NCBI RefSeq assembly: GCF_000143415.4
Contig: NW_003314379.1
Location: 1 to 64,000, forward strand
Length of the DNA: 64,000 bases
Source: Selaginella moellendorffii
Lineage: Eukaryota > Plantae > Lycopodiophyta
Direction: 5' to 3'
This document shows positions 82-57,056 of the stretch, in pieces. Every line of letters starts with the position of its first letter. Position 1 is the first letter of the stretch. The position numbers were made by a program, and so were the translations under genes. The notes below the pieces were generated by a model. That model saw only the letters and a list, made by a program, of their open reading frames with translations, had not been told where the DNA came from and did not search any database.

Positions 82-1230
82 TGTAAGCCACAAATTTTTC
101 CTTTCCAATTTGCCAGCTTACCTCGTCTATCCGTCCAACACTGCCTTGGCTTTTGCTAAGTTCCCTTGCCAAGGTTCTCGCCTATGGTACCAGCTCCTAC
201 TTGGTTTCAGCTACTCACTGCACGAGCAACGGAGTGTTAGCCATCCTTCCACGGATTCCCAAATCACTCTCAATCCCCCTCCCCGGGTTAGACTGGACTT
301 AAGGTTCGGCTACACTCCCCGCAAGCACAAGCAGCCAAGCACACCAAGCTTCCAGGTTCCTAACATCCCTTGGTACCACAAGACTTGATCATGGGACCCT
401 CTAAATCCCAAGTCTTGAGTGCAACACTTGCTTTGGGACGCCGGGGCGAAACATCGTGGCCTAACGGCCCGGTATGGGTACCTCTCGCCCCCCACTTCCA
501 TCCCGAAGGAAGGCCCAAGCCCCTAGGAAGGGCGAGGACCAATGAGCCGCATGGTACTCAAGTGGGGCACCACTCCACATGAGCCGGGAGCACCGCAATC
601 GGTTTCCCTTTCGGGAGTGGGAGCTGCTCTTGAGCACTTCTTTGGATGGCCCCTCCGGCACCAGCCAAGTCCATGGTCACTCCCACCCAAGGCCCCTTAG
701 TCCCAGTCCCAACCTCAAGTCGGTTTGGAAGCCCAACTGGAGAGTCCCTTCAAAACTGGTTCCTAGACCTCACTATCCCTACTATACTTTTGGAACCCCC
801 TGCAGCCCCCCCCCCCCTGGGAGACGCACGCATTGGGCTTTCACCCCTTGACCCGTATTAGTATTTGGACTTAGTCTCTGGCTCGATCTCGGATCCGATT
901 TCGGATCCGACTTCGGATTCGGTCTCGGACTCGATCGCGGACTCGATCTCGGACCCGATCTCGGCCCCGACCTCGGACTCGACTTCGGACTCGGTCTCGG
1001 ACCCGATTTCGGATCTCGGACTCCGTCTCGAACTCGGTCTCGAACTCGGACTCGAACTCGGTCCCCGAGTCGGTCTTGGACTCGATTCCGGACTCTATCT
1101 CGAACTCGGTCCTAGAGTCGGTCTTGGACTCGATCTTTGACTTGGTCCCATCCGATGAACTCTTTGTCATTTTGGTCATGCTTTCGGGGTTCCCTTAGCC
1201 TACGACACCTCGGCGAGTTGGTTCCTTACA
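82..1230 (-). repeat. 3' LTR of element A
   Basis: TGTAAG...CTTACA termini. About 15 differences (by eye) from 6366-7513. Adjoins the PPT. Confidence 0.97.
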
Positions 1231-1246
1231 ACTCCACCACCCATAG
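1231..1246 (-). other. Polypurine tract of element A
   Basis: Minus strand CTATGGGTGGTGGAGT directly before the 3' LTR. Identical motif precedes the 3' LTR of element C (26354-26369). Confidence 0.85.
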
Positions 1247-1294
1247 AAGAAGTTCGATGCCCACATCGAACGTCTCTTTTTTATCTTACGACTT

Positions 1295-1540
1295 GTTGAC
1301 CATGTCTCCGGGGGCATCCCCCCACTTAGCGGTGTGCCTAAGTTAGCCTCCCCGGCCAAGAGCTCATGACAACGGAATATAGGTGTCCCTATACTCCTCC
1401 CCTCACCACGCCCTAGTATGGGGTCGGGACTTGAACCCAGCCTTGCTTTACTAGGGGGTTGGGACTCGAACCCAACCTCCGTAGAATACGTCTACGGTTT
1501 CGACATCCCCGCAGGGAGTCGGGCGTAGCTCCCTACGCCT
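1295..1540 (-). ncRNA. Candidate conserved structured cis-acting RNA in the retrotransposon 3' UTR
   Basis: Multiple stems with compensatory changes relative to homologous copies at 24808-25037 and 25101-25218. Confidence 0.7.
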
Positions 1541-1633
1541 GGTCGACCTAGCTAACCCATGCTAATTAGCTTACCTTCGGCGCGCCTTCGGGTCCCAACA
1601 TATGCCATTGCTCAACTTCTCAAATTGATACTT

Positions 1634-4600
1634 TTAATTGAACTTTGCATAAGTACATAGAGTTCTGCCATGCAGAAATTCCTCCACTAGATCTCGCGCG
1701 TTCGCTAGGTTCTCCTCCGGTTCCCATGTTGCTTCGCAGTGTGGAAATCCTTTCCACTTCACATGGAACTCTCTCACCTCGCGTCCTTGTCGCTTGCTCT
1801 TGCGCGCATTGAGGATGGCCTCGACTTCGTATTCCTCCTCCCCTTGGATAACCTCAGGTAAAGGTCTTACTTGGTCCTTGCGAAGCGGATCCTCAAAATA
1901 CGGCTTGAGTAAGTTCACGTGGAACACGGGATGCATCTTCCCCATCTCTCGAGGAAGTCGGAGACGGTAAGCCACTTTACCGATTCGAGCCTCAATCTCG
2001 TAAGGCCCCGCGAACCTTTGGGTCAACTTCCGGCTGATCCCACTTGGTAGCCTGAGGTTCTTGGTGTTCAGCCACACCTTCTCCCCAGCTTGGAACTCCA
2101 CATCTCGACGCTTTTGGTTCGCGTACTTAGTTTGCCTTTGTTGAGCCCGTTCCAAGGAATCCCTCACTAGATTCCAAATGTTGAGTCTTTCCGCCGTGAA
2201 TGCCTCCACTGCGGGTAACTCTCCATGATACTCGGCCACGCCGAGTTCCACAGGGCCTTCAATAGCTCGCCCATTGATGACTTCCCATGGACTCACCCCG
2301 ATGCTCGAATGTGGTGAGTTGTTATAACACATTTCCGCAAGTCCCAAATGACTTACCCAGTCGGTCTGGTCTCCCGAGACATAGCATCGCAAATAATCCT
2401 CCAGCTGCCTATTCACCCTTTCCGTTTGTCCGTCTGTCTGTGGGTGATAGGCCGTGCTGAATTTCAACTTGGTGCGATACTGTTCTAGGAGTGTCCTCCA
2501 GAACCTACTGGTGAAGATCTTATCTCGATCTGAGATAATCTCTTCCGGCCTTCCCCGCACTCGAACCACTTGTTCGAAGAACAGCTTCGCCACACCTTCC
2601 GCATCCACATCCGTTGCGGTGGGTATGAAATGTGCCATCTTTGAAAATCGGTCCACCACCACGAATATCGCATCGAACCCCTCGCTTGGGGGTAGTCCCG
2701 TGATGAAATCCATCGTGAGACATTTCCACGGACGATCTGGAATGGGGATGCTTTGCAACAAGCCCCCACTAGCCTTCGTCACGGCTTTGACCTGCTGACA
2801 TGTTGGACATGTCTTTACATAGTCTTGGACGTCCTTAGCCATATCTGGCCAGTGATACTTCCTTTTGAGTAAGCCCATCGTCTTGGGCACTCCGCCGTGT
2901 CCCGCGAGAGGTCCGTCATGACACTCTTCCAAGGCTACTTTCCTTAGTTCCCCTTCTGGAACATACACCCTCGTTTGCTTGTAATATATGAGTCCGTTGC
3001 GTTCCGCATAGCCCGTTTTCTCTTCCGTTGGCAGCTCACCTCTCTGGTGAGCTTCCCGCGCCTCCAGATTCCTCAGCAACACTTCTTGTGCTAGACCATC
3101 ACTATCGTATGCGGTCCGCACATCGTCCCAAAAGGTTGTTGTCGCGCTAGATATCGCCAACTTCAAGCTCGCTTTTCGACTTAGCGCATTTGCCACGATG
3201 TTGCTCTTCCCAGGCTTGTACAGGATCTCGCAATCAAATTCGGCCAAAGCATTGGCCCACCGACCTTGTTTTCCCCTTAGGTCAGGCTGTGACAAGAAGT
3301 GTTTCGTTGCCACATTGTCCGTGTAAACCTTGAAGTGTCTCCCAAGGTAGTGTCGCCACTCCTTGAGCGCCTTGACCACCGCAAACAATTCCTTCTCGTG
3401 GGCAGGCCACTTCCGTTGAGCCTTGTCCAGCTTCTTCGAGAAGAACGCTACTGGATGGTTGTCTTGCTTCAAAACTGCGCCCAACGCAAAGTCCGAAGCA
3501 TCCGTGTCTACCTCAAAGTCCTTACCAAAGTCTGGTAATGCCAACACCGGAGCCTTCCTCAACTTCCCTTTGAGGTGGACGAATGCCGCCTCGCATTCCG
3601 CTGTCCATACCATCTTCCCTTTTCCTGTTTGGTCCATTAAGGGCAGGGCTACTCTCGAATAGTGTCTGATAAACTTTCGATAGTAGTTGCATAGCCCCAG
3701 GAACACCCTCAACTCATGTACATTCGATGGTCGNNNNNNNNNNNNNNNNNNNNNNNNNNNNNNNNNNNNNNNNNNNNNNNNNNNNNNNNNNNNNNNNNNN
3801 NNNNNNNNNNNNNNNNNNNNNNNNNNNNNNNNNNNNNNNNNNNNNNNNNNATACAGTTTGTGTTCCCTTAGTTTCTCAAACACCTTCGCCAAGTGTTCGG
3901 CATGCTCCTCTAGCGTCTCGCTATAGATCAGGATGTTGTCAATATAGACGACCACGAAGCGATCCAGATAGGGTACAAAGATGTGGTTCATCAACGCCGA
4001 AAACGTTGCCGGCGCATTGCACAGCCCAAAGGGCATCACCAAAAACTCAAAGCTCCCATACCTCGTTCGACAGGTTGTCTTCTCGACATCTTCCTCAGCT
4101 ACCCTGATCTGGTAGTATCCTGACCTTAGGTCAATCCTCGAGAAGTATTTTGCCTTTCCCAACCTATCGAACAGGTCCTCGATCCTTGGCAAAGGGTACT
4201 TGTTCTTCTTGGTATACTTGTTGAGCAACCGGTAAACTATGCACATGCGCATAGATCCATCTTTCTTTTTCACAAATAGCACTGGCGCCCCATACGGCGA
4301 CTTGCTCAACCTAACATACCCTTTGCCCACCAACTCTTCTAGTTGGCTCTTGAGCTCCTTGAGTTCTTTTTCGTTCAATCGATAGGGTGGACGAACCACC
4401 ACCTCAGCACCCTCGACCAGCTCAATCTTATGTTCTATCGGTCGTGCGGGGGGCAACCCCGCCGGTAGCTCCTCTGGCATGGTATCCTGGAATTGGTCTA
4501 GCACCTGCTGGATCACTAAAGGTACTTCTTCCGTTCTTGTCTTTTTGTCACTCTTCACCGAGAGTAAGCACAAAAAGGCTGCCTTAGTTCCTTTAGTGAG

Positions 4601-5431
4601 TTGTCTTCTCGTGGACACCAGGTTTAAGCATGACTCTTTGGCCTTGCTTTGCCCTACCTTTAGATCCTGGGCCTCCACCCTAGATCTTCTTCCTTGGGCA
4701 TTCGCCAATACCACAAGGTTCCTACCTTGTCCATGTAGGGCTACCACAAACCGATTAAACCAATCCATTCCGAAGATCACGTCAAATCCCGCCATGTCCA
4801 AGACGGTGAAATCCATATCCACTTTCCATGTCCCTACTTCGACTCTCGCTTGTCGAAGTATCTCATCGGTGCTTTGGCTACCCTGAACAAACTCTATAGT
4901 CCTTGGTTCGCCTAGCCGCTGCACCGTTAGTCCAGCTTGCCGGACTATGTCTGCAGCCACAAAATTATCCGAAGCACCCGTGTCAATAAGGATCTTAACA
5001 AAGCTACCTCCGAGCTTCCCTCGGAGGGCTAGTAGATGTCGCGAACGACTCTCTACCAAAGTTGCTCGTGTAATGAGTAACTTTGAGTTAGGGACTGGAT
5101 CACATACCTCAGTTTGGACTTCACCCGACTTGATGGCCATATTGGCTCTGGCCTTCTTCGGGTAGGGACATTCCCTCGAGAAGTGTCCCACTTCGCCGCA
5201 GTTGTAGCATACGTTGTTGCCCACGCTGCTATACGACTTGACCTTCTTATCCGTGGGTTTGTCTTTTTTCGCTTGACTTCCCCACGTACTCGCTCGCTGG
5301 CCACCGGCTTTGCCTTTCCGGAACCCCGAGGACTCATTCTTAGAGAAACTCTTCTTGAATTTCCCCTTGCTATACGTTCCCCTCGGTTTGGCCCCTTTGC
5401 TAAATGTGGATCCCGACCCTGCGTGTTTCCC
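1634..5431 (-). pseudogene. Element A pol frame: CCHC knuckle, aspartic protease, RT, RNase H, integrase, chromodomain
   Basis: [38 protein letters not shown] (for YIDD), TDASD, HHCC and MDFITGLP integrase motifs, GPY, YEVEAIL...VKWKGF...TWEP. N gap at 3734-3850. The frame is open from the slippery site at 5431; the listed ORF starts at a GTG at 5224. Confidence 0.93.
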
Positions 5432-6306
5432 TTTCGCAGGTTATCGTTGAAATGCACCTTGATGGCCGCATCCAACGCTTCCTTGTAGTTGGTCGGGTTC
5501 CAGCGCATCACCTCACCGCGAGCCCAGGTTTGCAAACCTGATATAAAGGCATGGAACGCATCCATATCCCCCATGTCCGTGACAAGTATCCTCTTTGCCA
5601 TGAACCCATTCACATATTCCTGGATGGTTCCAATCTGCTTCAGCCTACTCAGCTCATCTCTCAGATGCAGAGTGGCATTCGGAGGAACGTATGTCGCGCG
5701 GATCCTCGCCTTCATCATGTCCCAGGTGGCCACCGGTCCTTCGTTGGCCTCCGTTGTTCTCCACCAAGACTTGGCATTATCTGCCAAGTATGGTTTTGCA
5801 CATGGGACCTTCTCCGAGCTCGGTAACCGCAACGCTCAGAAGTAGTCCTCCATATCGTAAAACCAATCCTCCACAACCTTATAGTCGTTCACTCCCTTGA
5901 ACACCGGTGGGGGCTTTGGTTTGTACTTGGGAACTGCCTGAGGGACTGATTCCACTTCGGTCTGTTCGACCTTGTCTGGTTTTGCCTCAGTCCCTGCCGA
6001 AGGGTCCGCACCTTCTGCGCTGCCAGCATCCGCAGTCTTTCGCTTTTTCTTCCGCTTCTTGTCACGCTTTAACTTGCGTACGAGAGTCTCCAGCAGGGCA
6101 TTGGTCTGTGCCAACTGTCCTTCTAGCACGTCCAATCGAGCCTTGGACGACCGAACCTTGCCACCGGACTCCTGTTTGGAAGTTTCCTCACTGGAGTCCT
6201 CCTCATGCAAGGATTCCTCATCCATAGCCTCTTGTTCAACCGGAGGCTCCAGCTCCGGCGGAGGTTCCATCTCCGCCTGGGTTCGCTTACGCCCTGCCCT
6301 TGCCAT
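5053..6306 (-). pseudogene. Element A gag with one premature stop
   Basis: ORFs 5836-6306 and 5053-5832 are in the same frame, separated by CGA>TGA (element B reads DYFRAL here). Retrotransposon gag motifs AKSWW and LKQxGTIQEY. Confidence 0.9.
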
Positions 6307-6350
6307 CTCCCAGCAATCCGCTTCTATCCTTCGCTAGAACTGAGATAAAG

Positions 6351-6362
6351 GCTCCGATACCA
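6351..6362 (-). other. Primer binding site (tRNA-iMet type) of element A
   Basis: Minus strand TGGTATCGGAGC, 3 nt from the 5' LTR end. Confidence 0.9.
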
Positions 6363-6365
6363 AAT

Positions 6366-7513
6366 TGTAAGCCACAAATTTTTCCTTTCCAATTTGTCAG
6401 CTTACCTCGTCTATCCGTCCAACACTACCTTGGCTTTTGCTAAGTTCCCTTGCCAAGGTTCTCGCCTATGGTACCAGCTCCTACTTGGTTTCAGCTACTC
6501 ACTGCACGAGCAATGGAGTGTTAGCCATCCTTCCACGGATTCCCAAATCACTCTCAATCCCCCTCCCCGGGTTAGACTGGACTTAAGGTTCGGCTACACT
6601 CCCCGCAAGCACAAGCAGCCAAGCACACCAAGCTTCCAGGTTACTAACATCCCTTGGTACCACAAGACTTGATCATGGGACCCTCTAAATCCCAAGTCTT
6701 GAGTGCAACACTTGCTTTGGGACGCCGGGGCGAAACATCGTGGCCTAACGGCCCGGTATGGGTACCTCTCACCCCCCACTTCCATCCCGAAGGAAGGCCC
6801 AAGCCCCTAGGAAGGGCGAGGACCAATGAGCCGCATGGTACTCAAGTGGGGCACCACTCCACATGAGCCGGGAGCACCGCAATCGGTTTCTCTTTCGGGA
6901 GTGGGAGCTGCTCTTGAGCACTTCCTTGGATGGCCCCTCCGGCACCAGCCAAGTCCATGCTCACTCCCACCCAAGGCCCCTTAGTCCCAGTCCCAACCTC
7001 AAGTCGGTTTGGAAGCCCAACTGGAGAGTCCCTTCAAAACTGGTTCCTGGACCTCACTATCCCTACTATACTTTTGGAACCCCCTGCAGCCCCCCCCCCC
7101 TGGGGGACGCACGCTTTGGGCTTTCACCCCTTGACCCGTATTAGTATTTGGACTTAGTCTCTGGCTCGATCTCGGATCCGATTTCGGATCCGACTTCAGA
7201 TTCGGTCTCGGACTCGATCGCGGACTCGATCTCGGACCCGATCTCAGGCCCGACCTCGGACTCGACTTCGGACTCGGTCTCGGACCCGATTTCGGATCTC
7301 GGACTCCGTCTCGAACTCGGTCTCGAACTCGGACTCGAACTCGGTCCCCGAGTCGGTCTTGGACTCGATTCCGGACTCTATCTCGAACTCGGTCCTAGAG
7401 TCGGTCTTGGACTCGATCTTTGACTTGGTCCCATCCGATGAACTCTTTGTCATTTTGGTCATGCTTTCGGGGTTCCCTTAGCCTACGACACCTCGGCGAG
7501 TTGGTTCCTTACA
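6366..7513 (-). repeat. 5' LTR of element A
   Basis: Near-identical to 82-1230. Adjoins the PBS. Confidence 0.97.
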
Positions 7514-10500
7514 ACCTCGTTCGACAGGTTGTCTTCTCGACATCTTCCTCAGCTACCCTGATCTGGTAGTATCCTGATCTTAGGTCAATCCTCGAGAAGT
7601 ATTTTGCCTTTCCCAACCTATCGAACAGGTTCTTGATCCTTGGCAAAGGGTACTTGTTCTTCTTGGTATACTTGTTGAGCAACCGGTAGTCTATGCACAT
7701 GTGCATAGATCCATCTTTCTTTTTCACAAATAGCACCGGCGCCCCATACGGCGACTTGCTCAACCTAACATACCCTTTGTCCACCAACTCCTCTAGTTGG
7801 CACTTGAGCTCCTTGAGTTCTTTTTCGTTCAAATGATAGGGTGGACGAACCACTGCCTCAGCACCCTCGACCAGCTCAATCTTATGTTCTATCGGTCGTG
7901 CGGGGGGCAACCCCGCCGGTAGCTCCTCCGGCATGGTATCCTGGAATTGGTCCAGCACCCGCTGGATCACTAAAGGTACTTCTTCCGTTCTTATCTTTTT
8001 GTCACTCTTCACCGAGAGTAAGCACAAAAAGGCTACCTTAGTTCCTTTAGTGAGTTGTCCTCTCGTGGACACCAGGTTTAAGCATGACTCTTTGGCCTTG
8101 CTTTGCCCTACCTTTAGATCCTGGGCCTCCACCCTAGATCTTCTTCCTTGGGCATTCGCCAATACCACAAGGTTCCTACCTTGTCCATGCAAGGCTACCA
8201 CGAACCGATTAAACCAATCCATTTCGAAAATCACGTCAAATCCCGCCATGTCCAAGACGGTGAAATCCATGTCTACTTTCCATGTCCCTACTTCGACTCT
8301 CGCTTGTCGAAGTACCTCATCGGTGCTTTGGCTACCTTGAACAAACTCTATAGTCCTTGGTTCGCCTAGCCGCTGCACTGTTAGTCCAGCTTGCCGGACT
8401 ATGTCTGCAGCCACAAAATTATCCGAAGCACCCGTGTCAATAAGGATCTTAACAAAGCTACCTCCGAGCTTCCCTCGGAGGGCTAGTAGATGTCGCGAAC
8501 GACTCTCTACCAAAGTTGCTCGTGTAATGAGTAACTTTGAGTTAGGGACTGAATCACATACCTCAGTTTGGACTTCACCCGACTTGATGGCCATATTGGC
8601 TCTAGCCTTCTTCGGGTAGGGACATTCCCTCGAGAAGTGTCCCGCTTCGCCACAGTTGTAGCATACGTTATTTCCCACGCTATACGACTTGACCTTTTTA
8701 TCCGTGGGTTTGTCTTTTTTCGCTTGACTCCCCCACGTACTCGCTCGCTGGCCACCGGATTTGCCTTTTCGGAACCCCGAGGACTCATTCTTAGAGAAAC
8801 TCTTCTTGAATTTCCCCTTGCTATATGTTCCCCTCGGTTTGGCCCCTTTGCTAAATGTGGATCTCGACCCTGCGTGTTTCCCTTTCGCAGGTTATCGTTG
8901 AAATGCACCTTGATGGCCGCATCCAACGCTTCCTTGTAGTTGGTCGGGTTCCACCGCATCACCTCACCGCAAGCCCAGGTTTGCAAACCTGATATGAAGG
9001 TATGGAACGCATCCATATCCCCCATGTCCGTGACAAGTATCCTCTTTGCCATGAACCCATTCACATATTCCTGGATGGTTCCAGTCTGCTTCAGCCTACT
9101 CAGCTCATCTCTCAAATGCAGAGTGGCATTCGGAGGAATGTATGTTGCGCGGATCCTCGCCTTCATCATGTCCCAAGTGGCCACTAGTCCTTCGTTGGCC
9201 TCCGTCGTTCTCCACCAAGACTTGGCATTATCTGCCAAGTATGGTTTTGCACATGGGACCTTCTCCAAGCTCGGTAATCGCAACGCTCGGAAGTAGTCTT
9301 CCATATCGTAAAACCAATCCTCCACCACTTTATAGTCTTTCACTCCCTTGAAGACCGGTGGGGGCTTTGGTTTGTACTTGGGAACTGCCTGAGGGACTGA
9401 TTCTACTTCGGTCTGTTCGACCTTGTCTGGTTTTGCCTCAGTCCTGGCCGAAAGGTCCGCACCTTCTGCGCTGCCAGCATCCGCAGTCTTTCTTTTTTTC
9501 TTCCGCCTCTCGTCACGCTTTAGCTTGTGTACAAGAGTTTCCAGCAGGGCATTGGTCTGTGCCAACTGTCCTTCTAGCACGTCCAATCGAGCCTTGGACG
9601 ACCGAACCTCGCCACCGGACTCCTGTTTGGAAGTTTCCTCACTAAAGTCCTCCTCGTGCAAGGATTCCTCATCCATAGCCTCTTGTTCAACCGGAGGCTC
9701 CAGCTCCGGCGGATGTTCCGTCTCCACCTGGGTTCACTTACGCCCTACCCTTGCCATCTCCCAGCAATCCGCCTCTATCCTTCACTAGAACTGAGATAAA
9801 GGCTCCGATACCAAATTGTAAGCCACAAATGTTTCTCTTCCAATTTGCCAGCTTACCTCGACTATCCGTCCAACACTGCCTTGGCTTTTGCTAAGTTCCC
9901 TTGCCAAGGTTCTCGCCTATGGTACCAGCTCCTACTTGGTTTCAGCTACTCACTGCACGAGCAACAGAGTGTTAGCCATCCATCCACAGATTCCCAAATC
10001 ACTCCCAATCCCCCTCCCCGGGTTAGACTGGACTTAAGGTTCGGCTACACTCCCCGCAAGCACAAGCAGCCAAGCACACCAAGCTTCCAGGTTCCTAACA
10101 TCCTTTGGTACCACAAGACTTGATCATGGGACCCTCTAAATCCCAAGTCTTGAGTGCAACACTTGCTTCGGGACGCCAGGGCGAAACACCGTGGCCTAGC
10201 GGCCCGGTATGGGTACCTTTACCCCCCCACTTCCATCCCAAAGGAAGGCCCAAGCCCCTAGGAAGGGCGAAGACCAATGAGCCGCATGGTACTCAAGTGG
10301 GGCACCACTCCACATGAGCCGGGAGCATCGCAGTCGGTTTCCCTTTCGGGAGTGGGAGCTGCTCTTGAGCACTTCTTTGGATGGCCCCTCCGGCACCAAC
10401 CAAGTCCATGCTCACTCCCACCCAAGGCCCCTCGGTCCCAGTCCCAACCTCAAGTCAGTTTGGGAGCCCCACTGGAGAGTCCCTTCTAAATTGGTTCCTG

Positions 10501-10969
10501 GACCTCACTATCCCTACTATACTTTTGGAACCCCCTGAAGCCCCCCCCCCCCCCCCTGTGAGACGCACGCTTTGGGCTTTCACCCCTTGACCCGTATTAG
10601 TATTTGGACTTAGTCTCTGGCTTGATCTCGGACCCGATTTCGGATCCGACTTCGGATTCGGTCTTGGACTCGATCTCGGACTCGATCTCGGACTCGATCT
10701 CGGACCCGACCTCGGACTCGACTTCGGACTCGGTCTCGGACCCGATTTCGGATCTCGGACTCCGTCTCGAACTCGGTCTCGAACTCGGACTCGAACTCGG
10801 TCCCCGAGTTGGTCTCGGACTCGATTCCGGACTCTATCTCGAACTCGGTCCTAGAGTCGGTCTTGGCCTCGATCTTCGACTTGGTCCCATCCGATGAACT
10901 CTTTGTCATTTTGGTCATGCTTTCGGGGTTTCTTTAGCCTACGACACCTCGGCGAGTTGGTTCCTTACA
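7514..10969 (-). mobile_element. Element B: 5' half of an older same-family chromovirus (5' LTR, PBS, gag, PR, start of RT) interrupted by element A
   Basis: LTR 9817-10969, PBS 9802-9813. gag from ATG 9757 with a stop at codon 8. pol to ...KTTCRTR at 7514. RT continues at 81 down to ~25 ([16 protein letters not shown]). Confidence 0.95.
9817..10969 (-). repeat. 5' LTR of element B
   Basis: Same family as A's LTRs but more diverged. TGTAAG...CTTACA termini. Confidence 0.95.
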
Positions 10970-14001: not shown

Positions 14002-16085
14002 ATGGCTCCGAAGCGCGAGTCTGAGAGCATTCATGAGTTTCTCAGTTCAAGGTATCCTTCCCACCGCAAACTGGAAGATGGTGTCAAGAGGCTGCGAATG
14101 CGGGGTTCCATAAGCTGGATGACCTAGCCAATGTCAACTTCAGGTCTCTCCGCTCCCACCTTTCGGCTCTCTTTTGCATTGCGCTTCGCGACTATATGAG
14201 GCCTGACGCCACAGATCTTGGTATGGTGTGTCTTCCCTTTGTAGTTTTGTGTTCACATCCTTCTTGTGCAGTGGAAGACGACTGCACATTGGAGTGGGGT
14301 TTTGAGTGTACGGAGGTGACCGTCGCTCTGCGGCAAGAGAATGAAATCCTGGAGCTGCCTGCTCAGTACAGTCCGATTGGTCCTCCTCCTGATTCTGAGG
14401 AGGAAATAATTGAGCAAGCTCCAGACGAAGAGGTGAGACTGTTGTTTTCTTTTTCTTTCTCATGTTCCGCATGAATTCAGGACCTAGGCGAAGAATTGGA
14501 AATGATGGAGAATGCTTATAATGATCTACCGGAACCTGCTCAGCCGGGTAAGTTGAGCATTACTCTGACGATTCCTGTCTGAGTGTTGTTCATAGCAGGA
14601 CTGCTGGAGCTGAAAATGTACGTGTTCTCATCAAAGCGGTCTAAGCGGGCCGTAGAGAGGATTTGGTGCAAGACTAGTGGCACCAAGATCTTAGAGAGGC
14701 GGAGCTATGTGAGTCTTCAGGAGGCGGTGCAGGCACGTTGGGACGCCGGAGTTAAGGCAGTTCTGCTAGTTGGAGTGCCTGGGATTGGCAAGACCGGCTT
14801 TATCATCTGCATGCTGCTCAGTTTAATGAAGCAGAGGAAAGCCATTGCACTACAGACCAAGGGAGGAGATTTCTTCCTATTTGAACCGCAGCCTGTGGAA
14901 GCGCCGGGTACTGGCGAGGCTTACGCGTGTCTGAAGCTGAGAAACAAGTCCGTTCTATACGACCCCGAAGTCTACTTTTTGGTGGATGGCAAGATGCCTG
15001 ACGTCCCTTCATTCAGCTGCAAGTCATTACTTGCCACCATCCCCAAGCTGCTCAACTTCCAGGATTACGAGAAGGATGGCCGTGGAGATCTTGTCTTGCT
15101 ACCGGTCTGGTCTGCTGCGGAGATCGCACTGGCTTGGCAGGAGATATTTGATCCGAGACTGCCAGCTCTCGCACATCTTCAGGAAGTTGCTGTGGAGAAT
15201 GCGAAGTTGATTGCCTTGCTTGAAGCAAGAAAGAAGCTGACACTAGATGTTGTCAAAGAGCGGTACAAGAAATGTGGTGGCACGGCTCAGTTTGTGCTGG
15301 AGAAGCCGCACGTAGACTTGGATGAGGTAGTAAGAGGTTTGCAGTCCGTACAGCAGACAGTTGAATTGGTGGGCAGGCAGGTGGCTGATGGAGACCATCC
15401 ATCCCACAAGGTAGTGCACCAGAGGGTGAAACAGGGATACGCCAGCTACGAGTACATGTTTGCTTCTCCGTACCTGTCCGAGGCTGCCCGAAAGAAGCTT
15501 AAAGAGTCAACAAGTGGGGCATTACGGCTGTTCCTGTCCTTCAAGGGTTTGGCAGCGCACGGTGTAAATGGTTGCAAGGGCAATGTATTTCAGCACGAAT
15601 TCAAGTCACTGGCTCACGGAGTTCAGCGATTCAAGGTTCGCCAAGTCTATGAAGATAGAAGCCTGGATGACCAGGAGATGGTGTTCAATTTCGGACAGCC
15701 TTTCGAAGTTCCAAAACTGGAAAGTTTACCAGTTGCTGCTCCTGTGAATCAGATCATCTGGCCAGAGTCTACTGTTGAAGAAACAATCGATGCTATGAAG
15801 ATTGTGCGACTGGCCGGTCGGCTAGACGTTTTGGAGGTGTACCAAGTGACCCTCAGTTCTGCAAGGCATGCGCATGGCCTCAAGTACGCAGCAATGTTGA
15901 AGGTGATGCACAAGTTTGGAATTCCTCCTCACAGGGTCAAGGTATACATCGTTACTACATCCGAGCTTTACCCTGAAGCTGGCTATCAAAACTGGAGGAA
16001 GTCCAGGAACCTCGTGCTCCGAGATGAAAGAATCCTGCGGAGGCTAGTTGGGATCACTCAGTACGTTCTGGATAGTGGAGTGTGA
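14002..16085 (+). CDS. Crinkler/RHS (CR)-type protein: N-terminal header + P-loop NTPase + restriction-endonuclease-like domain; apparent frameshift in exon 1
   Basis: Walker A GVPGIGKT, Walker B FLVDG, LPVWSAAEI, CGGTAQFVL, SHKVVH, FASPYL, GNVFQ, P....ETIDA, VYQVT. GT-AG introns at 14221-14270, 14433-14480 and 14548-14598 join in frame to ORF 14583-16085. Confidence 0.75.
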
Positions 16086-17201: not shown

Positions 17202-17273
17202 GGTTTCGTGGTCTAGTGGTAGTGACACTCGACTCTGAATCCAGTAACCGGAGTTCAAATCTCGGTGGAACCT
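17202..17273 (+). tRNA. tRNA-Gln(CTG), with stem mismatches (possibly pseudogene)
   Basis: 72-nt GGTTTCGTGGTCTAGTGG...CTCTGAATCCAG...GAGTTCAAATCTCGGTGGAACCT. Upstream CAA, downstream T-runs. C:C mismatch in the anticodon stem and G:G mismatch in the T stem. Confidence 0.8.
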
Positions 17274-20325: not shown

Positions 20326-22342
20326 TGTGAGATACAAAATCCCTAGGCCCCAAAGTGGAGCCGAAAGGGTGCCACGTGGTAGTGGCCGAAGCGAAAGCCA
20401 AACGAGCGTAACACGTTTGGACTAAAAGTTCCGACTTGAAAAGGTCGAGAGTGGGAGTGGAACTCTCAACGAAGTGCTCGAGGAATGAGCACGAAGCGAG
20501 CAATAAGCGAGGCTCCAAAAAGGGACCCAAAAGGACCAACACATGACACGTGGAAGAGTCCGAGATGGAGTCTGAGGTGGAGTCCGAGATGGAGTCCGAG
20601 ATGGAGTCTGAGATGGACCCGAAATGGACCCGAGATGGACCCGAGTTGGAGTCCGAAGTGGAGTCCGAGAAGGACCCCGAGATGGAGTCCAAGGTGGAGT
20701 CCGAGGTGGACCCGAGATGGAACTGAGATGGAGTCCGAGATGGAGTCTGAAGTGGAGTCCGAGATGGACCCGAGATGGAGTCTGAGATGGAGTCCGAAGT
20801 GGAGTTCGAGAAGGACCCCGAGATGGAGTCCAAGGTGGAGTCCAAGGTGGACCCGAGATGGACCCGAGATGGAGTCCGAGATGGAGTCCGAGATGGAGTC
20901 TGAGGTGGAGTCCGAGATGGAGTCCGAGGTGGAGTCCGAGGTGGAGTCCGAGATGGAGTCCAAGATGGACTCGAGATGGAGTCCGAGATGGAGTCCGAGG
21001 TGGAGTTCGAGATGGAGTCTGAGCTGGACCCAAGATGGAGTCCGAGATGGACCCGAGATGGGACCCGAGATGGAGTCCGAGAAGGACCCGAGATGGAGTC
21101 CGAGATGGACCCAAGATGGACCTGAGATGGAGCCCGAGATGGACCCGAGATGGAGTCCAAAGTCGAGACCGGGACCGAGACCGAGACCGGGACCGAGACC
21201 GAGACCGAGATCGGGACCGAGACCGAGATCGGGACCGAGACCGAGACCGAGGCCGAGGCCAAGACCGAGCCCGAGCCCGAGTCCGAGTCCGAATCCAAGT
21301 CCGAGTCCGAGTCTGAGTCCGAGTCTGAGTCCGAGTTCGAGTCTGAGAGGGTGAAAGCCCAAAGCGTTCGTCTCCCAGACCCTGGGGGGTTTGGTGAGCT
21401 CCAAAAGTATAGTAGGGGGAGGACTGCAGTGGAGCCAGTTTGGGCAGGAAAGGCCAGTTTGGCCCAGGAAGGCTGTACCTAGTGTTGGGTGATGAGCTGC
21501 CCATTGGGAAGTCCAAGACTAGAGTGAACACGGACCGACAAGTGGGGTAGCTTGGTGAAGTGTTCAAGAGCCGGCTCTAGTTCCCCCGGGAGATCAACTG
21601 GCCGATGCTCCCAGTCCAAGTGTGGGTGGCACTACCTATTTGGATACCTGGTGTGGCTCAACAGAACCTTGCTCTAAGCCCATGGCTAGAGCACCCAAGG
21701 GCAGAAGGCGAGGAGAATACCCACGAGGCCCACGTAGGGCCACGGTGTTCCGAAATGTTGCTCCAAAGTCCTAGACTGTGGAAAGGAAGAAGAGTAACCC
21801 TCTAGTGTGGTGACCAAGGACACAGTCACACAATGAGGAAGTCCCAGAGGACAGTTGGACTTAGTGGTCGGGCCTATGGGCCTTGATCCAGTAGCAGTGA
21901 TGGCGAACATGGCCATGGACAGAAAGGGACTTGGTGGGGACTGGAAAAGAGATATTGGGGAAGGCTATTCCCCATGTCTGTGAGCATCCTAAGGATGTGA
22001 AGGAGTGGATCTGGGATGATCACTCATGGACGGATGGCCCAATCTTTGAGAGATGGGACTGTGATGTAGGTGGCATCAAACCACCGGTGTGACCAAGGTG
22101 AATGCGCATGGCCTCAGCGTAATGGGCCGATATGTCGGTGGTACCTTGGGGTGTCGGTCATGGGATCGGACACGTGGAGCACTTGGACCAAGTGCTAAGG
22201 TTGAGTGGCATGGATGCCATTTTCGGGGCTATTAAGCCCCAAGTCCCGAATTGGACCTACGGAGGTTGTGAAAGAGACTCCTCCAAGTGGTCGGAGATGT
22301 GGTTAAGTGACTAAAGTAGAATGGAAAAATTAGTCGCTCACA
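20326..22342 (+). repeat. 5' LTR of element C with internal 12-mer/6-mer tandem array (~20555-21345)
   Basis: TGTGAG...CTCACA termini. (GAGATGGAGTCC)n, (GAGACC)n and (GAGTCC)n arrays. Confidence 0.95.
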
Positions 22343-24807
22343 ACTTGGTATCGGAGTTGTTCCTTAATCCGACTTTTATTGGTGCTCAAGTATATCACTA
22401 TTAGTGTTGGCATTAGAAGGTCCGAGGAGTGGGCCTATCCTTGAGGAGTAGCAGGTCGGGAAGATATGGCTCTCCATTACAGTTCATGTGTGAACTTGTA
22501 GACACGGTGGTGGATAGAAAAGGGCCAATAATGGAACGACTTTGGGATCTTGGGAACAGTGCAAGGTTTTCCTCATTGAGTTGAGGAGGTGATCCAGATG
22601 AGTATTTGACTCAACAAACTAGCTAATGTAGTTGTGGTAAACAACTATAGTTGGGATCATGGGGAAGATAGAGACTCCAAAAACAATAAAGGAGTCACAA
22701 GATTACCCTCATATAGTGGAGGCTGGTGCTCATTAACTTGAGACCAGAATTGATGACTGAGGGAGGTCAAATATAAAAGAGGACACGAGTCCTTGAAATG
22801 GCTGGGGCTACCTTTTATAAATGCGGGAACAGACCCAAGGAGTTGGGGGTGTGCTCAAAGGGTGAGTCAGTATTCTCATCGCATAGACAAGTGGTCATAA
22901 GGGGCAAAAGGTTGCCCCCAGAGAACAAAATCAAGTGTCGGAGTAACACTTGCAAAGATGGTCCTTGTGAGTAAGACATGAATACAAGGAGTTGTAATCC
23001 AGTGAGCTAGCACCTCAAAAGAAGGACCTCATGGGTCGTCGGATTAGCAAAGTCCAAAAGTTGAATGACTCCAATAGAGTTAAGGAATAATCCTGAGGGA
23101 TTGATGGAAGCATTTGGACTGAGGTGTGTGGTGCCCCACGAAGGATGGGGAGGATCTTGAAATCCAAGCATGAGAACAGTGTGTATCTCATCGGTGGCAG
23201 AATTTGCCATACTAAAGTCGTGGGAAAGGTGTTCCCAAAAGAAGAAACTTTGGTGCAGAGTTGTGTGCGAACACTATGGTGTAGTGCTAACGGATAGTTG
23301 GCATGAGAAATGACTGGGTTGGTCTTGGCAAAAACCTAGACACAAGTGCAAAGTGTCATAAAGGCATATTCATGGAGCCGATGGTGTGAGGACACTAAAT
23401 GGGCCAAGGTGTGATACCTTGGGATTATGTTGATGAGTTCATAAGGACCCCTTGCCAAGGGAATCCTAATGGAAATGGGAATGGCATAGCCTAAGCTGGA
23501 AGGCATGTGGTAGAGTGTGGTGACCCGGATAATGATGGAGGTGTGCAAGCACCAGCAATGAGTTATAGGACTTGACAACTATGAGGCAACTAAGCAAGAG
23601 GTGCGTAATTGGTTAAACGGGTAGAAGGTAGTTATCCAAGACTTCTTAATGGCATAAAGAAGTTAAATATACCCTTATCGGGGATAAGTTGCTTATGTTG
23701 CGATATAATAAGTCAATGTCGTAAAAGGAAATACTCATTGTTAAGGAGGCCATCATTGGGACACCCAAGCACTCTAGAACACCAAGAGGTGGTGTTTAGT
23801 GTTGCGAGGGCAATAAATAAGGCCCAAAGGATAAAATCCCTAGCGAATGATGGATAGAAGGTGCTATCCAAATGTTCAAGGTTGCAGAGATGGGAGAAAT
23901 CTCTCTACCCGAATTGGACAAAGTCAAAAGGGGATTTTGGCAAGGCTAATGATGGGCATAGAAAGGCCTATAAGTAGCAACGGTAATCCCAGTGTGTGGG
24001 ATTACAAAGTGAGCAAACCCGGATTGAGGAACCACTCCCTACGCTGTCAGGTAGGTTCATCCCTATGAATACTTGCCAAGGCATGGTAGAAAATGCAAAG
24101 CTATCTTCCTATTTCAGAGGAGAATGACCAAAAGAAATGTGTGAGGCCAAAAGGCAAGTAGTAAAGGGATAGAACCGAACCATGGGAATTGACAGGCATG
24201 ACCAAGGGTGGTTATGCAAGTTGGGAGTGGAGAATCAAGTGGGTGCTCAAGCATGTTGTTACTAATGACTGGGATGCCATGGAGAGTCTAAAACATGGGA
24301 TTGTCCATGTTAGACTATATGGCAATTGGAAAGCTTGTGAAAGGAGAGACCTTAGCAAGCTAAGGAATAGAGTTCCTTGAACGTTCCTCCTAGGTAGATA
24401 AGTACCTAGATGTCCAAGTGTAAATGGTTCATAAAACGCGCGAAATCAGAGTGGCGTAGCAGAAGCATGGTCTTGAAGCTTGCTATAAGGCAAAGCTATC
24501 AAGGTTGGGGAAGTAGTTTTCGAGTGTTCAAAGAGAGGGCTTTGAACGAAAGTCGATGGTTAAAGACTTTCACGCTTATGCATGAACTATGTTACAGTGC
24601 CCAGATGACTTGCTAAGCGAGATTGGCAAGTTGGGGGAATGAATACCCTAGTTGGAGGAGCCAACTTCAAAGGGGTGGCCCATGGGGCCGAGTATGGAGG
24701 AGTCCATGCATGATTACAGACATGTCAAGTGAGAGGACTTGGCAGTGTGGAGGAACTAGGTTCCTAAGTGTGATCTATAGTGCGCTTCAAGTATAAGTTG
24801 GTGCACC

Positions 24808-25218
24808 GGCGTGGGGAGTCACGCCAGGCATCCTATGTGATGCTGTCCATATATGTATATACGGAGGTTGGGTTCGAGTCCCGACCCTCTAGTGCTTGGG
24901 TTCGAGTCCCAACTCACTAGGGCGTGGTGATGGTTTGGAATATGAGGACACTCATATTTCGGTGGTCATGGACTCTCAGTGGGGAGACTGGTTTGGGCAC
25001 ACCGCCAAACGAGGGATGCCTGGGAGTCGTGATGCACGGTTAGATTGCTTAGTGTGAAAGCTCAGCATATCTAACTTGAACACTTTAGTGCAAGTGGCAC
25101 CAAGGATGTGGTGAATGAGATGGGGACACCCAGTCTTAGTTGCCATGGACCCTTGGCCGGAAGGGCTAGCTTGGGTGCACCGCTAAGTGTGGGGGATGCC
25201 CCCGGGGTCATGGTCAAC
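24808..25218 (+). ncRNA. Candidate structured RNA element in element C (full copy plus duplicated core)
   Basis: Homologous to the reverse complement of 1295-1540 with compensatory base changes. Core repeated at 24917-25037 and 25101-25218. Confidence 0.7.
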
Positions 25219-26369
25219 AACTTAAAGGTCTGGAAGACCTAGCATCTATTAGCAAACCTATTAAGGTGCCAAGGTTAGATCACTAGGTGATCCTATGGCC
25301 AAAAACAAGTGTGAGGTTAAGGGATAAAGTTCCAAGTTCAAAGTGTTGATTGGAACTATTGATGATGGTGTGGCTTGGTCAAGGTAACCAAATGGGAGGA
25401 ACACCTAAGGGAAATGAGCTATATCAATGTGATGGCATAATAAGTCCGAGGAAAATAGTCTCTATAAGAGATCCATCGAAGGGTCTCAAAGTTGGGCCAT
25501 GATAAAGCCCATAACAGAAAGTGCTAAGGAGACGTACTAGGGGTAAACACCCTTTGGACTTGGGAAAGTAAAGTCTTTGCTATGGAATTGAAAGAATACC
25601 TCGAGAATGGAGGTGACGATCCTGTGTTGCGTGGTGCAACAATCAAAGATAGGAGCAAAAGACTAGTGGCTAAAAAAAGGGCCATAGGAATCATGGGATA
25701 GAAGCCAAATGGCAAAGTTAGTCTAAAAACACTAATGTGTTGGATGCTAACGGGTTATCGGAAAGCAATGTGTTTCCAAGGATAGGTTCCCAATTGCTCC
25801 GATTTGGCGAAAGGGGAAGCTCCAAGGGATGGAGTGGTAAAGTAGCCAAATGATAGGGCCATGGACAGCCCTAGCACGAATTACGATAGCTAGAACTTGC
25901 CAAAGGTGGCACGATATCGAAGAGAGGATGATGGTGCCCTTAAGTAAAGAACTTCCTAGGATGGGGAAGTGGAGGTGCACCATGTGTAATGTGAGGTGTC
26001 GGAGAAATCTAGGAACTTGGCTCTGAGAAGTCAAAATTAAAAGTTCCAAAGTGCAAAGGTTATGTCGATGGAATCTGAGACTACTTGAGAATGAGTAGTG
26101 GGATCGGGTAAGAGAAGGTGTCTCTAACGGGTTTAGTGAGAACTAAACCAATAAAGGGAGAAAACCACCACAAGTGGTCAAATGAGTCTCTAAGTTGAAG
26201 AGACTATGCTCCTTAGAGGATGGGTAAAGCAAGGTGAGCCTTCGGTATTAAACCTTGGATGAATGTTGGCGAGGGGCAAAGATGCAAAGGGTAATACAAG
26301 CTAGTATTACTTTATAAAATAGTTTATCGTTCGATGAGGACATCGAACTTTGTCTATGGGTGGTGGAGT

Positions 26370-28309
26370 TGTGAGATACAAAATCCCTAGGCCCCAAAGT
26401 GGAGCTGAAAGGGTGCCACGTGGTAGTGGCCGAAGCGAAAGCCAAACGAGCGTAACATGTTTGGACTAAAAGCTCCGACTTGAAAAGGTCGAGAGTGGGA
26501 GTGGAACTCCCAACGAAGTGCTCGAGGAATGAGCACGAAGCGAGCAATAAGCGAGGCTCCAAAAAGGGACCCAAAAGGACCAACACATGACACGTGGAAG
26601 AGTCCGAGATGGAGTCCGAAGTGGAGTCCGAGATGGAGTCTGAGATGGACCCGAAATGGACCCGAGATGGACCCGAGTTGGAGTCCGAAGTGGAGTCCGA
26701 GAAGGACCCCGAGATGGAGTCCAAGGTGGAGTCCGAGGTGGACCCGAGATGGAACTGAGATGGAGTCCGAGATGGAGTCCGAGATGGAGTCCGAAGTGGA
26801 GTCCGAGATGGACCCGAGATGGAGTCCGAGATGGAGTCTGAGATGGAGTCCGAAGTGGAGTCCGAGAAGGACCCTGAGATGGAGTCCAAGGTGGAGTCCG
26901 AGGTGGACCCGAGATGGACCCGAGATGGAGTCCGAGATGGAGTCTAAGATGGAGTCCGAGGTGGAGTCCGAGATGGAGTCCGAGATGGACTCGAGATGGA
27001 GTCCGAGATGGAGTCCGAGGTGGAGTTCAAGATGGAGTCCGAGCTGGACCTGAGATGGAGTCCGAGATGGAGTCCAAGATGGACCCGAGATGGACCCGAG
27101 ATGGGACCCGAGATGGAGTCCGAAGTTGAGACCGGGACCGAGACCGAGACTGGGACCGAGACCGAGACCGAGATCGGGACCGAGACCGAGACCGAGGCCA
27201 AGACCGAGCCCGAGTCCGAGTCCGAGTCCGAATCCGAATCCGAGTCCGAGTCCCGAGTCCGAATCCGAATCCGAGTCCGAGTCCGAGTCTGAGTCTGAGT
27301 TCGAGTCTGAGAGGGTGAAAGCCCAAAAGCGTTCGTCTCCCAAGACCCTAGGGGGGTTTGGTGAGCTCCAAAAGTATAGTAGGGGGAGGACTGCAGTGGA
27401 GCCAGTTTGGCCAGGAAAGGCCAGTTTGGCCCAGGAAGGCTGTACCCAGTGTTGGGTGATGAGCTGCCCATTGGGAAGTCCAAGACTAGAGTGAACACGG
27501 ACCGACAAGTGGGGTAGCTTGGTGAAGTGTTCAAGAGCTGGCTCTAGTTCCCCCGGGAGATCGATTGGCCGATGCTCCCAGTCCAAGTGTGGGTGGCACT
27601 ACCTACTTAGATACCTGGTGTGGCTCAACAGAACCTTGCTCTAAGCCCATGGCTAGAGCACCCAAGGGCAGAAGGCAAGGAGAGTACCCACGAGGCCCAC
27701 GTAGGGCCATGGTGTTCCGAAATGTTGCTTCAAAGTCCTAGACTGTGGAAAGGAAGAAGAGTAGCCCTCTGGTGTGGTGACCAAGGACACAGTCACACAG
27801 TGAGGAAGTCCCAGAGGACAGTTGGACTTAATGGTCGGGCCTATGGGCCTTGATCCAGTGGCAGTGATGGCGAACATGGCCATGGACAGAAAGGGACTTG
27901 GTGGGGACTGGAAAAGAGATATTGGGGAAGGCTATGCCCCATGTCTGTGAGCATCCTAAGGATGCGGAGGAGTGGATCTGGGATGATCACTCATGGACGG
28001 ATGGCCCAATCTTTGAGAGATGGGATTGTGATGTAGGTGGCATCAGACCACCGGTGTGACCAAGGTGAATGCGCATGGCCTCAGCGTAACGGGCCGATAT
28101 GTTGGTGGTACCTTGGGGTGTCGGTCATGGGATCGGACATATGGAGCACTTGAATCAAGTGCTAAGGTTGAGTGGCATGGATGCCATTCTCGGGGCTATT
28201 AAGCCCCAAGTCCCGAATTGGACCTACGGAGGTTGTGAAAGAGACTCCTCCAAGTGGTCGGAGATGTGGTTAAGTGACTAAAGTAGAATGGAAAAATTAG
28301 TCACTTACA
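26370..28309 (+). repeat. 3' LTR of element C
   Basis: TGTGAG...CTTACA. Near-identical to the 5' LTR except for array copy number (1940 vs 2017 bp). Confidence 0.95.
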
Positions 28310-28612: not shown

Positions 28613-30258
28613 TGACTTGGTGGAAGCTCCTGAAGGACGTGAAGTTGTTGGATCACACTGGGTGTTCAAGCTTCATAGAAATCCTGATGGATCGGTACAG
28701 CGTTACAAAGCAAGACTTGTTGCTCAAGGATATTCACAAGTTCCTGGAGTGGATTTTGATGAGACATTCTCACCAATTGTGAAGCAGACAAGTATCAGAA
28801 TGCTTCTGGCTTTTTCAGCGGAGTTTGGTTTGTGCGCACATCACATGGACGTAAAAACAGCCTTCCTTAATGGGAACTTGAAGGAGGAGATATTTATGCG
28901 GCAACCCCCAGGCTTTGAGCTTTTTGGATCATGGTGCTCCGAACTCATTTGCAAGCTTCACAAGGCTCTTTATGGCCTTAAGCAGGCTTCCCGTCAGTGG
29001 TATGAATGTTTGGATTCTTTTCTTATGGATCTTGGTATACAGAGGTTGAACAGCGATGGAAATCTATATCTTTTTCAACAGGGTGATCACTTTGTTGTGA
29101 TAGCAGTTTATGTGGACGACTGTTTGATTGTCAGCAACAATGACACTGTTTTGAAGGATGTGAAGATCAAGCTTATGGACAGGTTTGTGATGAAGGACTT
29201 AGGAGTTGTGCGGCAGCTGTTAGGGATGGAAGTTGACAGGGATGAAGTAGACAGGACAATCACCCTCACACAGTGCCAATATGTGAAGAAGCTTCTCAAC
29301 CAGTTCAACATGACAAGTTGCAAATCCGTGACTACACTAGTCATCACTGGCATCAAGTTCACAAGCAAGATGGATGATTTATTTGATCAGCCCTCGGTCT
29401 ATCGATCGCTTGTTGGAGGACTACTCTACCTCGGCAACATGACTCGCCCCGACATATCCTTTGCCGTTGGTCTCCTCAGCCGATACATGCAGTCTCCGAG
29501 TTGTTATCATTGGCAAATGGCGAAGAGAGTTTTGAGGTATTTGAAAGGAATGGCTACTCATGGACTGGTTTACAAATGCTCAGGTCAGTCCAAATTTGTT
29601 CTTCAAGCTTACTGCGATGCAGATTGGGCTGGCAACTTGGATACACGACATTCAACCTCCGGAATTTGCTGCATACTTGCTGGTGCTCCGTTTTCATGGG
29701 GAAGCAAGAAGCAAACGACGGTTGCTCTTTCCAGTGCAGAAGCAGAGTACATAGCTGCTAGTACAGCAGCAAGGGAGATCATCTGGCTTCATCGATTACT
29801 TGGAGAACTCAATCAACAGTAATCAGATGCGACCATTCTGCATTGCGACAGTAGAAGTGCAATCGCCATGTCAAAGAATCCTGTGTTTCATGCTCATACG
29901 AAACATATAGACGTGCAGCATCACTTCATTCACAAACATGTAGCAGCCGGAGATCTTCACCTGGAATACGTTCCTTCACAGTATCAGTTGGCAGACCTTC
30001 TAACCAAGCCACTTTCGGAGCTCACATTCATCAAGCTGAGGAATCAACTTGGAGTGTTAAGCACCCTCAGCTTGAAGGGGGAGTGTAGGAATAATGATGA
30101 ACACGACAAGCAAGATGATTCATATCAGAAGCAGTCCGAATCGTGATCAGATCTCTAGTGATTTCTGATTTGATTGAAGTTGTATATATATATAGCCATA
30201 TATGAATCAGGGTGTGTGTTGAAGTGAAATCTGTTGTTCTTGCTCCGCTTTTCTTTCA
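28613..30258 (+). mobile_element. 5'-truncated Ty1/Copia element (RT, RNase H, PPT, probable short 3' LTR)
   Basis: YKARLVAQG, MDVKTAFLNG, LYGLKQ, YVDD, DADWAG, KHIDV. One stop at 29820. PPT TTGAAGGGGGAG, then TG at 30084. LTR end ~30258 is tentative. Confidence 0.9.
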
Positions 30259-49158: not shown

Positions 49159-49722
49159 TACTTATAGGCTCTGCTAGAGTGTAATCCAAGCTCAGATCGA
49201 AAGAAAAAGAGAAAGAAAACCAGCAATTCACTGGAAAGAAGCATGGAAAAGTGTAAAGTCTAAGCAAGGAAAGCTGCCATTGTCATTGTCATTTAGGTAG
49301 CTTTGCTCTTTGCTTACTTGACATTCTTTCCAATCCAAAACTCCAGCTTTGGTTTTCATTGCAAAGTGGAGGGAGAGAGAGAAAGTGGCTGTTCACTCAT
49401 TCACTCCATATTCAGTGTGTACATGGCTATAGAAATTAAATTCAACACCATGGCTGACACTCATCAGCTTTGTGACAGGCACACACACTTTCCTCCCCTG
49501 CTGCTGCCATCTCACCTGCGAATTCACATGAATCAACCAAATTTTTCCACTACAAAGTTACTGCGTCCACCAGGTATGATATTATGTTACCAAAGGTGGA
49601 GAAGTTTGGAAGGAAGAACACCAAGAGCACCACTAGATCTCAGGAGGAAGTGATCTTACAGATCGAGAGAGGTAGTAGCATTGCATTGCATTGTTGTAGG
49701 AGGAGGAGGAGGAGGAGCAAGG

Positions 49723-52475: not shown

Positions 52476-53324
52476 TTACAGGACGTAAGACGCTGGCTGG
52501 TCCGTCCAGGCACCACAGACGTGTCCATTCTCGCAGACATAAGCTCGGACCACAGGCTCGCCATCGTCGTGATACTCGAGCGATCGTCTCAAGCAGAAGC
52601 TCGTCACCATATCCCACATTGATGGCGCCAAGCAAAACGCACAGCTCTCGCCAGTCTTCTTGGCCTTGAGATCTCGCAAGTTCCGACACACCTGTGACGC
52701 CTTGAAGTCCTTGAAGATCCCACGAAAGAGCTTGTACTTCCGTCGCTCCTCCGAATGGACACACCCCGGCCAGTCGCAGAGGTAGAGGCTGTCCGTCCGG
52801 AACCGGCTAGCCAGCAGCTTGTTTCCCAGCTCTCTCGAGAATGTGGGCGATCCGGAAGCTACGTGAGGCCCAGCTCCAACAAGCTTGATCCGCTTCTTCG
52901 ATCGATGCTCGTCACCATTCCTGGTGTGATCGTCATCGCCACCAGCGAGCTCTCTTTCCAGCCCAAAATCCCAGCTATCTAGCAGCACCCCAGCGCTGTC
53001 GAGGCCCGGGCAGCAAACCAAGATCCTAAACAGAGTCGCCCATCCCCCGGCGGGCTCTCCCAGCTGGTCCTGGTGATCCTGGCGGGCCTGGCCGTGCTCC
53101 AGCACCTCGGGCACGATGGTGGGCAGCGCCCTCATGCACTGATTCCGCCAGCAAAAGCTCCGAATCACGTACCCAAATCGCCGGCACACGCACGCCAGCA
53201 CCGCCAAATGCCGCGGATCCTCCTCCATCCGCGAGAAAATGTTGACCAGGAGATCCTCGGACAAGCGGCTCAGCAGCACGGCGGCGCCTCCTCCTCCATC
53301 GCCGCTGCCCGATGCCGCCGCCAT
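52476..53324 (-). CDS. EID1: Phytochrome A-associated F-box protein (EID1 family)
   Basis: F-box LSEDLLVNIF, GNKLLASRFR.D.LY.CDWPGCVH, LFRGIFKDFK, RAYVCENGHV.GAWT. Confidence 0.85.
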   Translation of the reverse strand: MAAASGSGDGGGGAAVLLSRLSEDLLVNIFSRMEEDPRHLAVLACVCRRFGYVIRSFCWRNQCMRALPTIVPEVLEHGQARQDHQDQLGEPAGGWATLFRILVCCPGLDSAGVLLDSWDFGLERELAGGDDDHTRNGDEHRSKKRIKLVGAGPHVASGSPTFSRELGNKLLASRFRTDSLYLCDWPGCVHSEERRKYKLFRGIFKDFKASQVCRNLRDLKAKKTGESCAFCLAPSMWDMVTSFCLRRSLEYHDDGEPVVRAYVCENGHVCGAWTDQPASYVL

Positions 53325-56883: not shown

Positions 56884-57056
56884 TGTGCTCGATCGATCGC
56901 AACGCAACAGAGAGAAACAAGAGGGATGAATGGCCGTGGCCAGATTTTTTTATGATGGCCACTGGCTCATTCACACGTACTAGTGCTAGAGCGTGAGATC
57001 AAAAAGGTTACGCTCATCATAATCTAGTTTTCTTGTTTTCTTTTAATAACAATAAG

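Follow-up and report, generated by a model that had tools for sequence, protein, structure and literature searches.

Very little is known about the RNA signals that act in cis in plant LTR retrotransposons, or about the exploitation of coding by non-coding elements. Most packaging signals described so far are located in the 5' leader. Those of retroviruses and Ty elements, together with the dimerisation signals, consist of several hairpins with G-rich loops, are found in the 5' leader or early gag and belong to elements with a CCHC zinc knuckle. The RNA transport element (RTE) of IAP, the CTE of MPMV and the transport element of MusD are structured, non-coding and needed in cis; they follow the last gene and precede the polypurine tract (ppt). 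For the IAP RTE, which is located between pol and the ppt, a requirement for mobility has been reported (PMC2674570). Conserved RNA structure is also found in LARD and TRIM elements, and parts of a tRNA are mimicked by the Helenus TRIM, by viral 3' tRNA-like structures and by the tRNA-like element of HIV-1.

The present study concerns a 64-kb window of the Selaginella moellendorffii genome (the whole stretch of 64,000 nucleotides that was analysed). An exact match of the PPR protein encoded at 44673-46340 put the window at the start of scaffold GL377683.1 (assembly GCA_000143415.2), of which it is the first 64 kb, and its PPR, TPR and F-box genes agree with a land plant. Just upstream of the 3' LTR of a chromovirus in this window, element A, there is a folded RNA domain of ~250 bases, here called the module, which is found again in a non-coding element, element C. 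The module resembles the retrovirus and Ty signals in its hairpins with G-rich loops (GGAG) and in belonging to an element with a CCHC zinc knuckle, but it is located at the 3' end. Like the IAP, MPMV and MusD elements it is structured, non-coding and situated between the last gene and the ppt; however, no sequence or structure match to them was found, only the position agrees, and the host is a lycophyte. It differs from the tRNA mimics in that only the T arm is imitated, twice, and in the interior of the element instead of the LTR or the 3' terminus. Element C is similar to LARD and TRIM elements in its LTRs, primer-binding site, ppt and long non-coding interior, whereas the conserved domain is here delimited to ~250 nt and present in both an autonomous and a non-coding element. 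A domain that is short, delimited and constrained in both kinds of element opens the question of such signals to sequence, structure and expression surveys. We concluded that the module is probably a signal needed for copying of the element's RNA. As an RNA in which, unusually, the T arm is mimicked twice, it is also a candidate for a new family. The two elements and their parts are located in the window as follows.

82-7513, minus strand: element A, a chromovirus, with LTRs at 82-1230 and 6366-7513 (98.7% identical, ~1.15 kb each)
1634-6306, minus strand: gag-pol coding region of element A, between the LTRs
6351-6362, minus strand: primer-binding site of element A, 12 nt
20326-28309, plus strand: element C, non-coding and LARD-like, with LTRs at 20326-22342 and 26370-28309
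26328-26369, plus strand: polypurine-side island of element C, shared with 1231-1272 of element A

Element A encodes, in this order, a zinc knuckle (CCHC), protease, reverse transcriptase, RNase H, integrase and chromodomain, and it was classified as a chromovirus from this Ty3/gypsy domain order with the chromodomain last. The part from protease to chromodomain is a single open frame. In the gag part, before the zinc knuckle, there are one in-frame stop and one frame change, which may be programmed or a break. Only ~45 nt separate the primer-binding site from the start of gag. The element is flanked by four of the five bases of a target-site duplication, and is nested inside a sibling copy of the same family (copy B, 95-97% identical, at 1-81 and 7514-10969) that the scaffold start truncates.

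Element C is old, its LTRs of ~2 kb being 91% identical. No ORF longer than 100 aa was found in it, nor any protein similarity to element A. It was assigned to the LARD type by its LTRs, ppt, long non-coding interior, perfect 5-bp target-site duplication and primer-binding site; the latter (22345-22356) has the same 12 nt as that of element A. These 12 nt are also the primer-binding site of Helenus-1_SMo, a tRNA-like miniature LTR element of S. moellendorffii (PMC10886601 supplement). Since element C is without coding capacity and yet has its own target-site duplication, it was nonetheless inserted as a unit. The LTRs of A and C are barely alignable apart from a 12-nt tandem repeat, which forms long arrays in both (795-1147, 7078-7430, 10534-10888, 20554-21375 and 26588-27345). 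Directly 3' of the 3' LTR of element C there is a copia-type reverse transcriptase ORF (28617-29822), so a separate element abuts C.

In the sense direction the module consists of the hairpins H1, H2 and H3, a first T-arm look-alike (T1), a stem S containing a second one (T2), a purine-rich strand, a hairpin with a GACA loop and a four-way junction.

1295-1545, minus strand: module as found in element A (copy A), within the 3' UTR, downstream of the pol stop and upstream of the 3' LTR
1522-1539, minus strand: H1, a 7-bp hairpin with the loop GGAG; compared with C1 it shows one double change and one compatible single change
1479-1521, minus strand: hairpins H2 and H3; the sequence of H2 is different in C1, H3 is kept
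1457-1477, minus strand: T1, first tRNA T-arm look-alike; its 7-nt loop and closing pairs fit the T-arm/B-box pattern
1411-1456, minus strand: stem S, 8 bp, enclosing the second T-arm look-alike T2 (1424-1440)
1403-1411, minus strand: unpaired stretch rich in purines, without variation among A, C1 and C2; proposed to form a pseudoknot with the loop of arm 2
1374-1397, minus strand: hairpin of 10 bp, loop GACA; double changes in four of its pairs across A, C1 and C2
1301-1368, minus strand: four-way junction, cloverleaf-like; closing stem formed by 1359-1368 with 1301-1309
1344-1358, minus strand: junction arm 1
1324-1343, minus strand: junction arm 2
1310-1322, minus strand: junction arm 3
24808-25037, plus strand: full-length copy of the module in element C (C1); its T arms lie at 24866-24886 and 24896-24912, its hairpin at 24937-24960 and its junction at 24967-25031
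25098-25218, plus strand: module copy C2, 3' half only; hairpin at 25116-25138, junction at 25144-25212

A reading of the letters alone, made before this analysis (the sequence-only reading), had placed a covarying structured RNA in the 3' UTR of a chromovirus. The location was confirmed: copy A is non-coding and ends about 65 nt from the 3' LTR. All helices that had been quoted were present where they had been drawn, in A at 1539-1301 (minus strand), in C1 at 24808-25031 and in C2 at 25116-25212. By eye, the closing stem of the junction in A could be extended by 3-4 bp, to position 1295. Every reading frame of the module has stops in at least one copy, and on this ground a coding region was ruled out.

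The sample consisted of three module copies from a single 64-kb window, two of them within one element (C). When each copy was folded alone, the same hairpins and junction arms were obtained, with a higher stability than in shuffled sequences (z = -5.0 for A, -4.4 for C1 and -2.6 for C2). RNAalifold, applied to the plain alignment of A and C1, recovered most of the helices without manual input. With a covariance model of the 3' half exactly A, C1 and C2 were detected in the window (E between 1e-20 and 5e-15), and there were zero matches in 1.4 Mb of unrelated DNA chosen for shared short motifs.

According to the sequence-only reading the stems change in compensated pairs while the loops stay fixed. 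For the 3' half this was borne out by the three copies: 95% of the cells were paired, compared to 36-55% when the partners were slid, and 8 pairs were changed on both sides, compared to 3.6 +/- 1.4 in shuffles, none out of 500 of which reached 8. We concluded that the structure of the 3' half, the 10-bp hairpin and the four-way junction, is well supported by covariation. In the 5' half, present in the two copies A and C1, 97% of the cells were paired (32-48% when slid), and with only 2 double changes the shuffle control was not significant. The 5' half thus fits the helices drawn for it, but its covariation is not significant, since only two sequences, mostly invariant, could be compared.

A hand-aligned table of 64 pairs, which is biased because the helices were defined knowing all copies, contained 39 invariant pairs, 8 with a compatible change on one side, 14 with a double change and 3 that were disrupted in a single copy. 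A bulge in C2 was left out manually. Between A and C1 there are 34 substitutions, and 63 of the 64 pairs in this table were still standard, as against 50.3 +/- 1.7 when the substitutions were placed randomly (63 was reached in 0 of 20000 trials). The loops were better conserved than the stems, as had been noticed from the letters, with invariant columns making up 22 of 33 unpaired and 34 of 66 paired ones. The pseudoknot partners proposed earlier were present and invariant in A, C1 and C2, and the putative pseudoknot thus draws no support from covariation.

The helices contained 15 G-U cells versus 2 A-C cells, and in A and C1 folding of the sense strand was favoured over that of the antisense strand by 16-22 kcal/mol. 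The excess of G-U and the better sense fold point to the element's own RNA as the molecule that folds. The same two observations led us to reject antisense RNA and DNA hairpins. Template switching within inverted repeats was rejected as the source of the compensation, as it would yield perfect pairs and not 15 G-U cells.

Inside the module we found two tandem tRNA T-arm look-alikes, which the sequence-only reading did not contain. In all four hairpins (T1 and T2 of A and C1) a 7-nt loop and every invariant T-arm position are present. T1 and T2 are a tandem duplication older than the split between A and C. A complete tRNA cloverleaf was not detected, no tRNA model matching the module at E up to 10. 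ARAGORN found no tRNA in the module with default settings, and relaxed runs gave differing, poorly paired models in A and C1. The module as a whole tRNA was ruled out by the absent model match and these inconsistent models, and outside the T arms it has no likeness to a tRNA. In the LTRs of A and C the T-arm pattern was matched only with two mismatches, inside the tandem repeats. In Helenus and other TRIM elements the tRNA-like sequence is found inside the LTR of a miniature element, while the module is internal; an origin from the Helenus LTR was ruled out by its different T-loop. A tRNA-Gln (CTG) gene is located between elements A and C, at 17202-17273.

No Rfam family matched the module, even at E up to 10, and neither did the ribozyme covariance models, in agreement with the earlier opinion that this was no known ribozyme or Rfam family. 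As far as these searches reach, the module belongs to no described RNA family. Relatives of the integrase-chromodomain part of element A with more than 50% protein identity, at any length, were absent from the collections searched, which included 1.84 billion representatives. The module was absent from three distant chromovirus loci, and three pattern scans of viral contigs returned nothing, or chance matches without a covariance-model match. A scan of metagenomes for T-arm doublets gave at least 120 loci, and those listed were all unrelated to the module. Doublets 15-45 nt apart were common in metagenomes, and among the matches listed one contig had three in a row.

Outside the LTRs or their repeat-rich parts, comparison of A and C by blastn gave only four islands in common. 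The first comprises the 5' LTR end together with the primer-binding site. The module accounts for the second, in full (C1), and for the third, as its 3' half again (C2), while the fourth covers the polypurine side and the opening bases of the 3' LTR. In the remaining interior of C no similarity to A was kept. The full module is the largest of the four and the island that is not explained by general requirements of LTR elements. It had been claimed that the module is kept in a relative without recognisable coding sequence, and this holds for element C. Within C the module is 1.1 kb away from the ppt and does not adjoin it, unlike in A; the segment in between (25219-26327) is unrelated to A. Pairwise identity was 73% between C1 and A, 76% between C2 and A and 65% between C1 and C2. 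That each copy in C is nearer to A than to the other is what one would expect had C acquired the second one through recombination with an RNA resembling A.

A non-coding element cannot lose the features of its RNA that are recognised by the helper proteins and the cell, and therefore the retained module is a candidate for such a signal. We tentatively propose, at somewhat less than an even chance, that it is a cis-acting folded domain of the chromovirus genomic RNA by which Gag selects RNA for particles. The module would be part of the full-length sense transcript of this Selaginella chromovirus family and act in cis. The family's Gag, with its CCHC zinc knuckle, would select the RNA via the module, which might also pair two RNAs. 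In this scheme the hairpins and the four-way junction would serve as a scaffold displaying G-rich loops (GGAG, a G-rich pentaloop and GAUG) and the invariant purine-rich single strand, and the protein-less element C would keep the module, its 3' half twice, to compete for Gag. For HIV-1 and MLV it is established that zinc-knuckle proteins read exposed G in loops. A signal read by Gag would agree with the zinc knuckle, with the contrast between conserved G-rich loops and a variable scaffold, and with C2 being nearer to A than to C1. Moreover, the leader of A is very short and that of C is unrelated to it, so the usual 5' packaging site is not common to both, which leaves the module as the best candidate by elimination. 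Against selection by Gag stands the 3' position between pol and the ppt, where the export elements of animal retroelements sit (PMC2674570). The age of C and the distance of its module from the ppt also speak against it.

According to our analysis the main rival is an element that promotes the expression, or the export from the nucleus, of the unspliced full-length RNA, and whose T arms might engage tRNA-handling proteins. The module has the same position as the IAP RTE, in the order pol, RTE, ppt (PMC2674570), a non-coding element would likewise need export in cis, and the T arms have kept every invariant position in all four instances. However, Rfam showed no similarity to any such element, and the resemblance to tRNA is confined to the T arms. 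We consider an export element rather unlikely.

It is still less probable that the module is a captured tRNA-derived or SINE-like passenger, kept by descent, with a structure that was inherited from its source and is not used. The exact fit to the T-arm/B-box pattern and the tandem duplication of the T arms would agree with such an origin, and tRNA-like sequences are known in LTR elements of S. moellendorffii (Helenus, PMC10886601). A passenger is nevertheless difficult to reconcile with the compensated changes, which accrued at 65-76% identity and left nearly all variable pairs paired, or with the rest of the C interior, which is without similarity to A. In addition, the best supported half of the module is the part that is not tRNA-like.

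The Ty1 cyclisation sequences and the 3' part of the Ty3 primer site lie near the 3' end of the RNA. By analogy with Ty1 cyclisation and the bipartite primer-binding site of Ty3, the module could aid reverse transcription if it annealed to the primer tRNA or to the RNA's 5' end, and the invariant unpaired segments kept in it would be in line with this. When duplexes of at least 8 bp between the module and the 5' region were searched for, none was common to A and C; the best 5' matches in A were inside the gag coding sequence and in number about what chance would give. On these grounds 5'-3' cyclisation was rejected as far as the 5' region scanned is concerned, and a role in reverse transcription is on the whole improbable.

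The T-arm look-alikes are the oddest feature of the module, and neither packaging by Gag nor nuclear export explains them. An improbable explanation is that the tandem T arms are working mimics that show two tRNA elbows to the tRNA-handling machinery, while the junction serves for particle entry. Candidates for this machinery are T-loop modifying enzymes, an export receptor or the pathway of cell-to-cell movement on which plant mRNAs are set by tRNA-like motifs (reviewed in PMC8047152). Working T-arm mimics, if true, would be an interface between retroelement and host of a kind not described before.

The T arms could alternatively act in the DNA, as B boxes binding TFIIIC or as parts of a pol III unit, and the B-box pattern is indeed kept in all four instances. 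No convincing A box common to A and C1 was seen by eye, however, and in the sense strand there was no TTTT within 700 nt after the module in A, or up to the end of C. A DNA site would also leave the compensated stems and the G-U bias unexplained, and we regard this alternative as very improbable. A self-cleaving ribozyme, as in retrozymes, has the four-way junction as the sole point in its favour and is hardly credible, since no ribozyme family matched at E up to 10 and the arms are without the internal loops of junction ribozymes.

The window contains several further genes outside elements A and C. A 500-aa open frame at 14583-16085 has a P-loop-like motif and is without a Pfam match or a gene-index record. 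A PPR gene is located at 44673-46340 and a TPR/EF-hand/ZZ gene at 49681-52380. These are followed by three F-box genes in a triplicated segment (52476-62000), with repeats at about 54.3, 58.0 and 60.6 kb.
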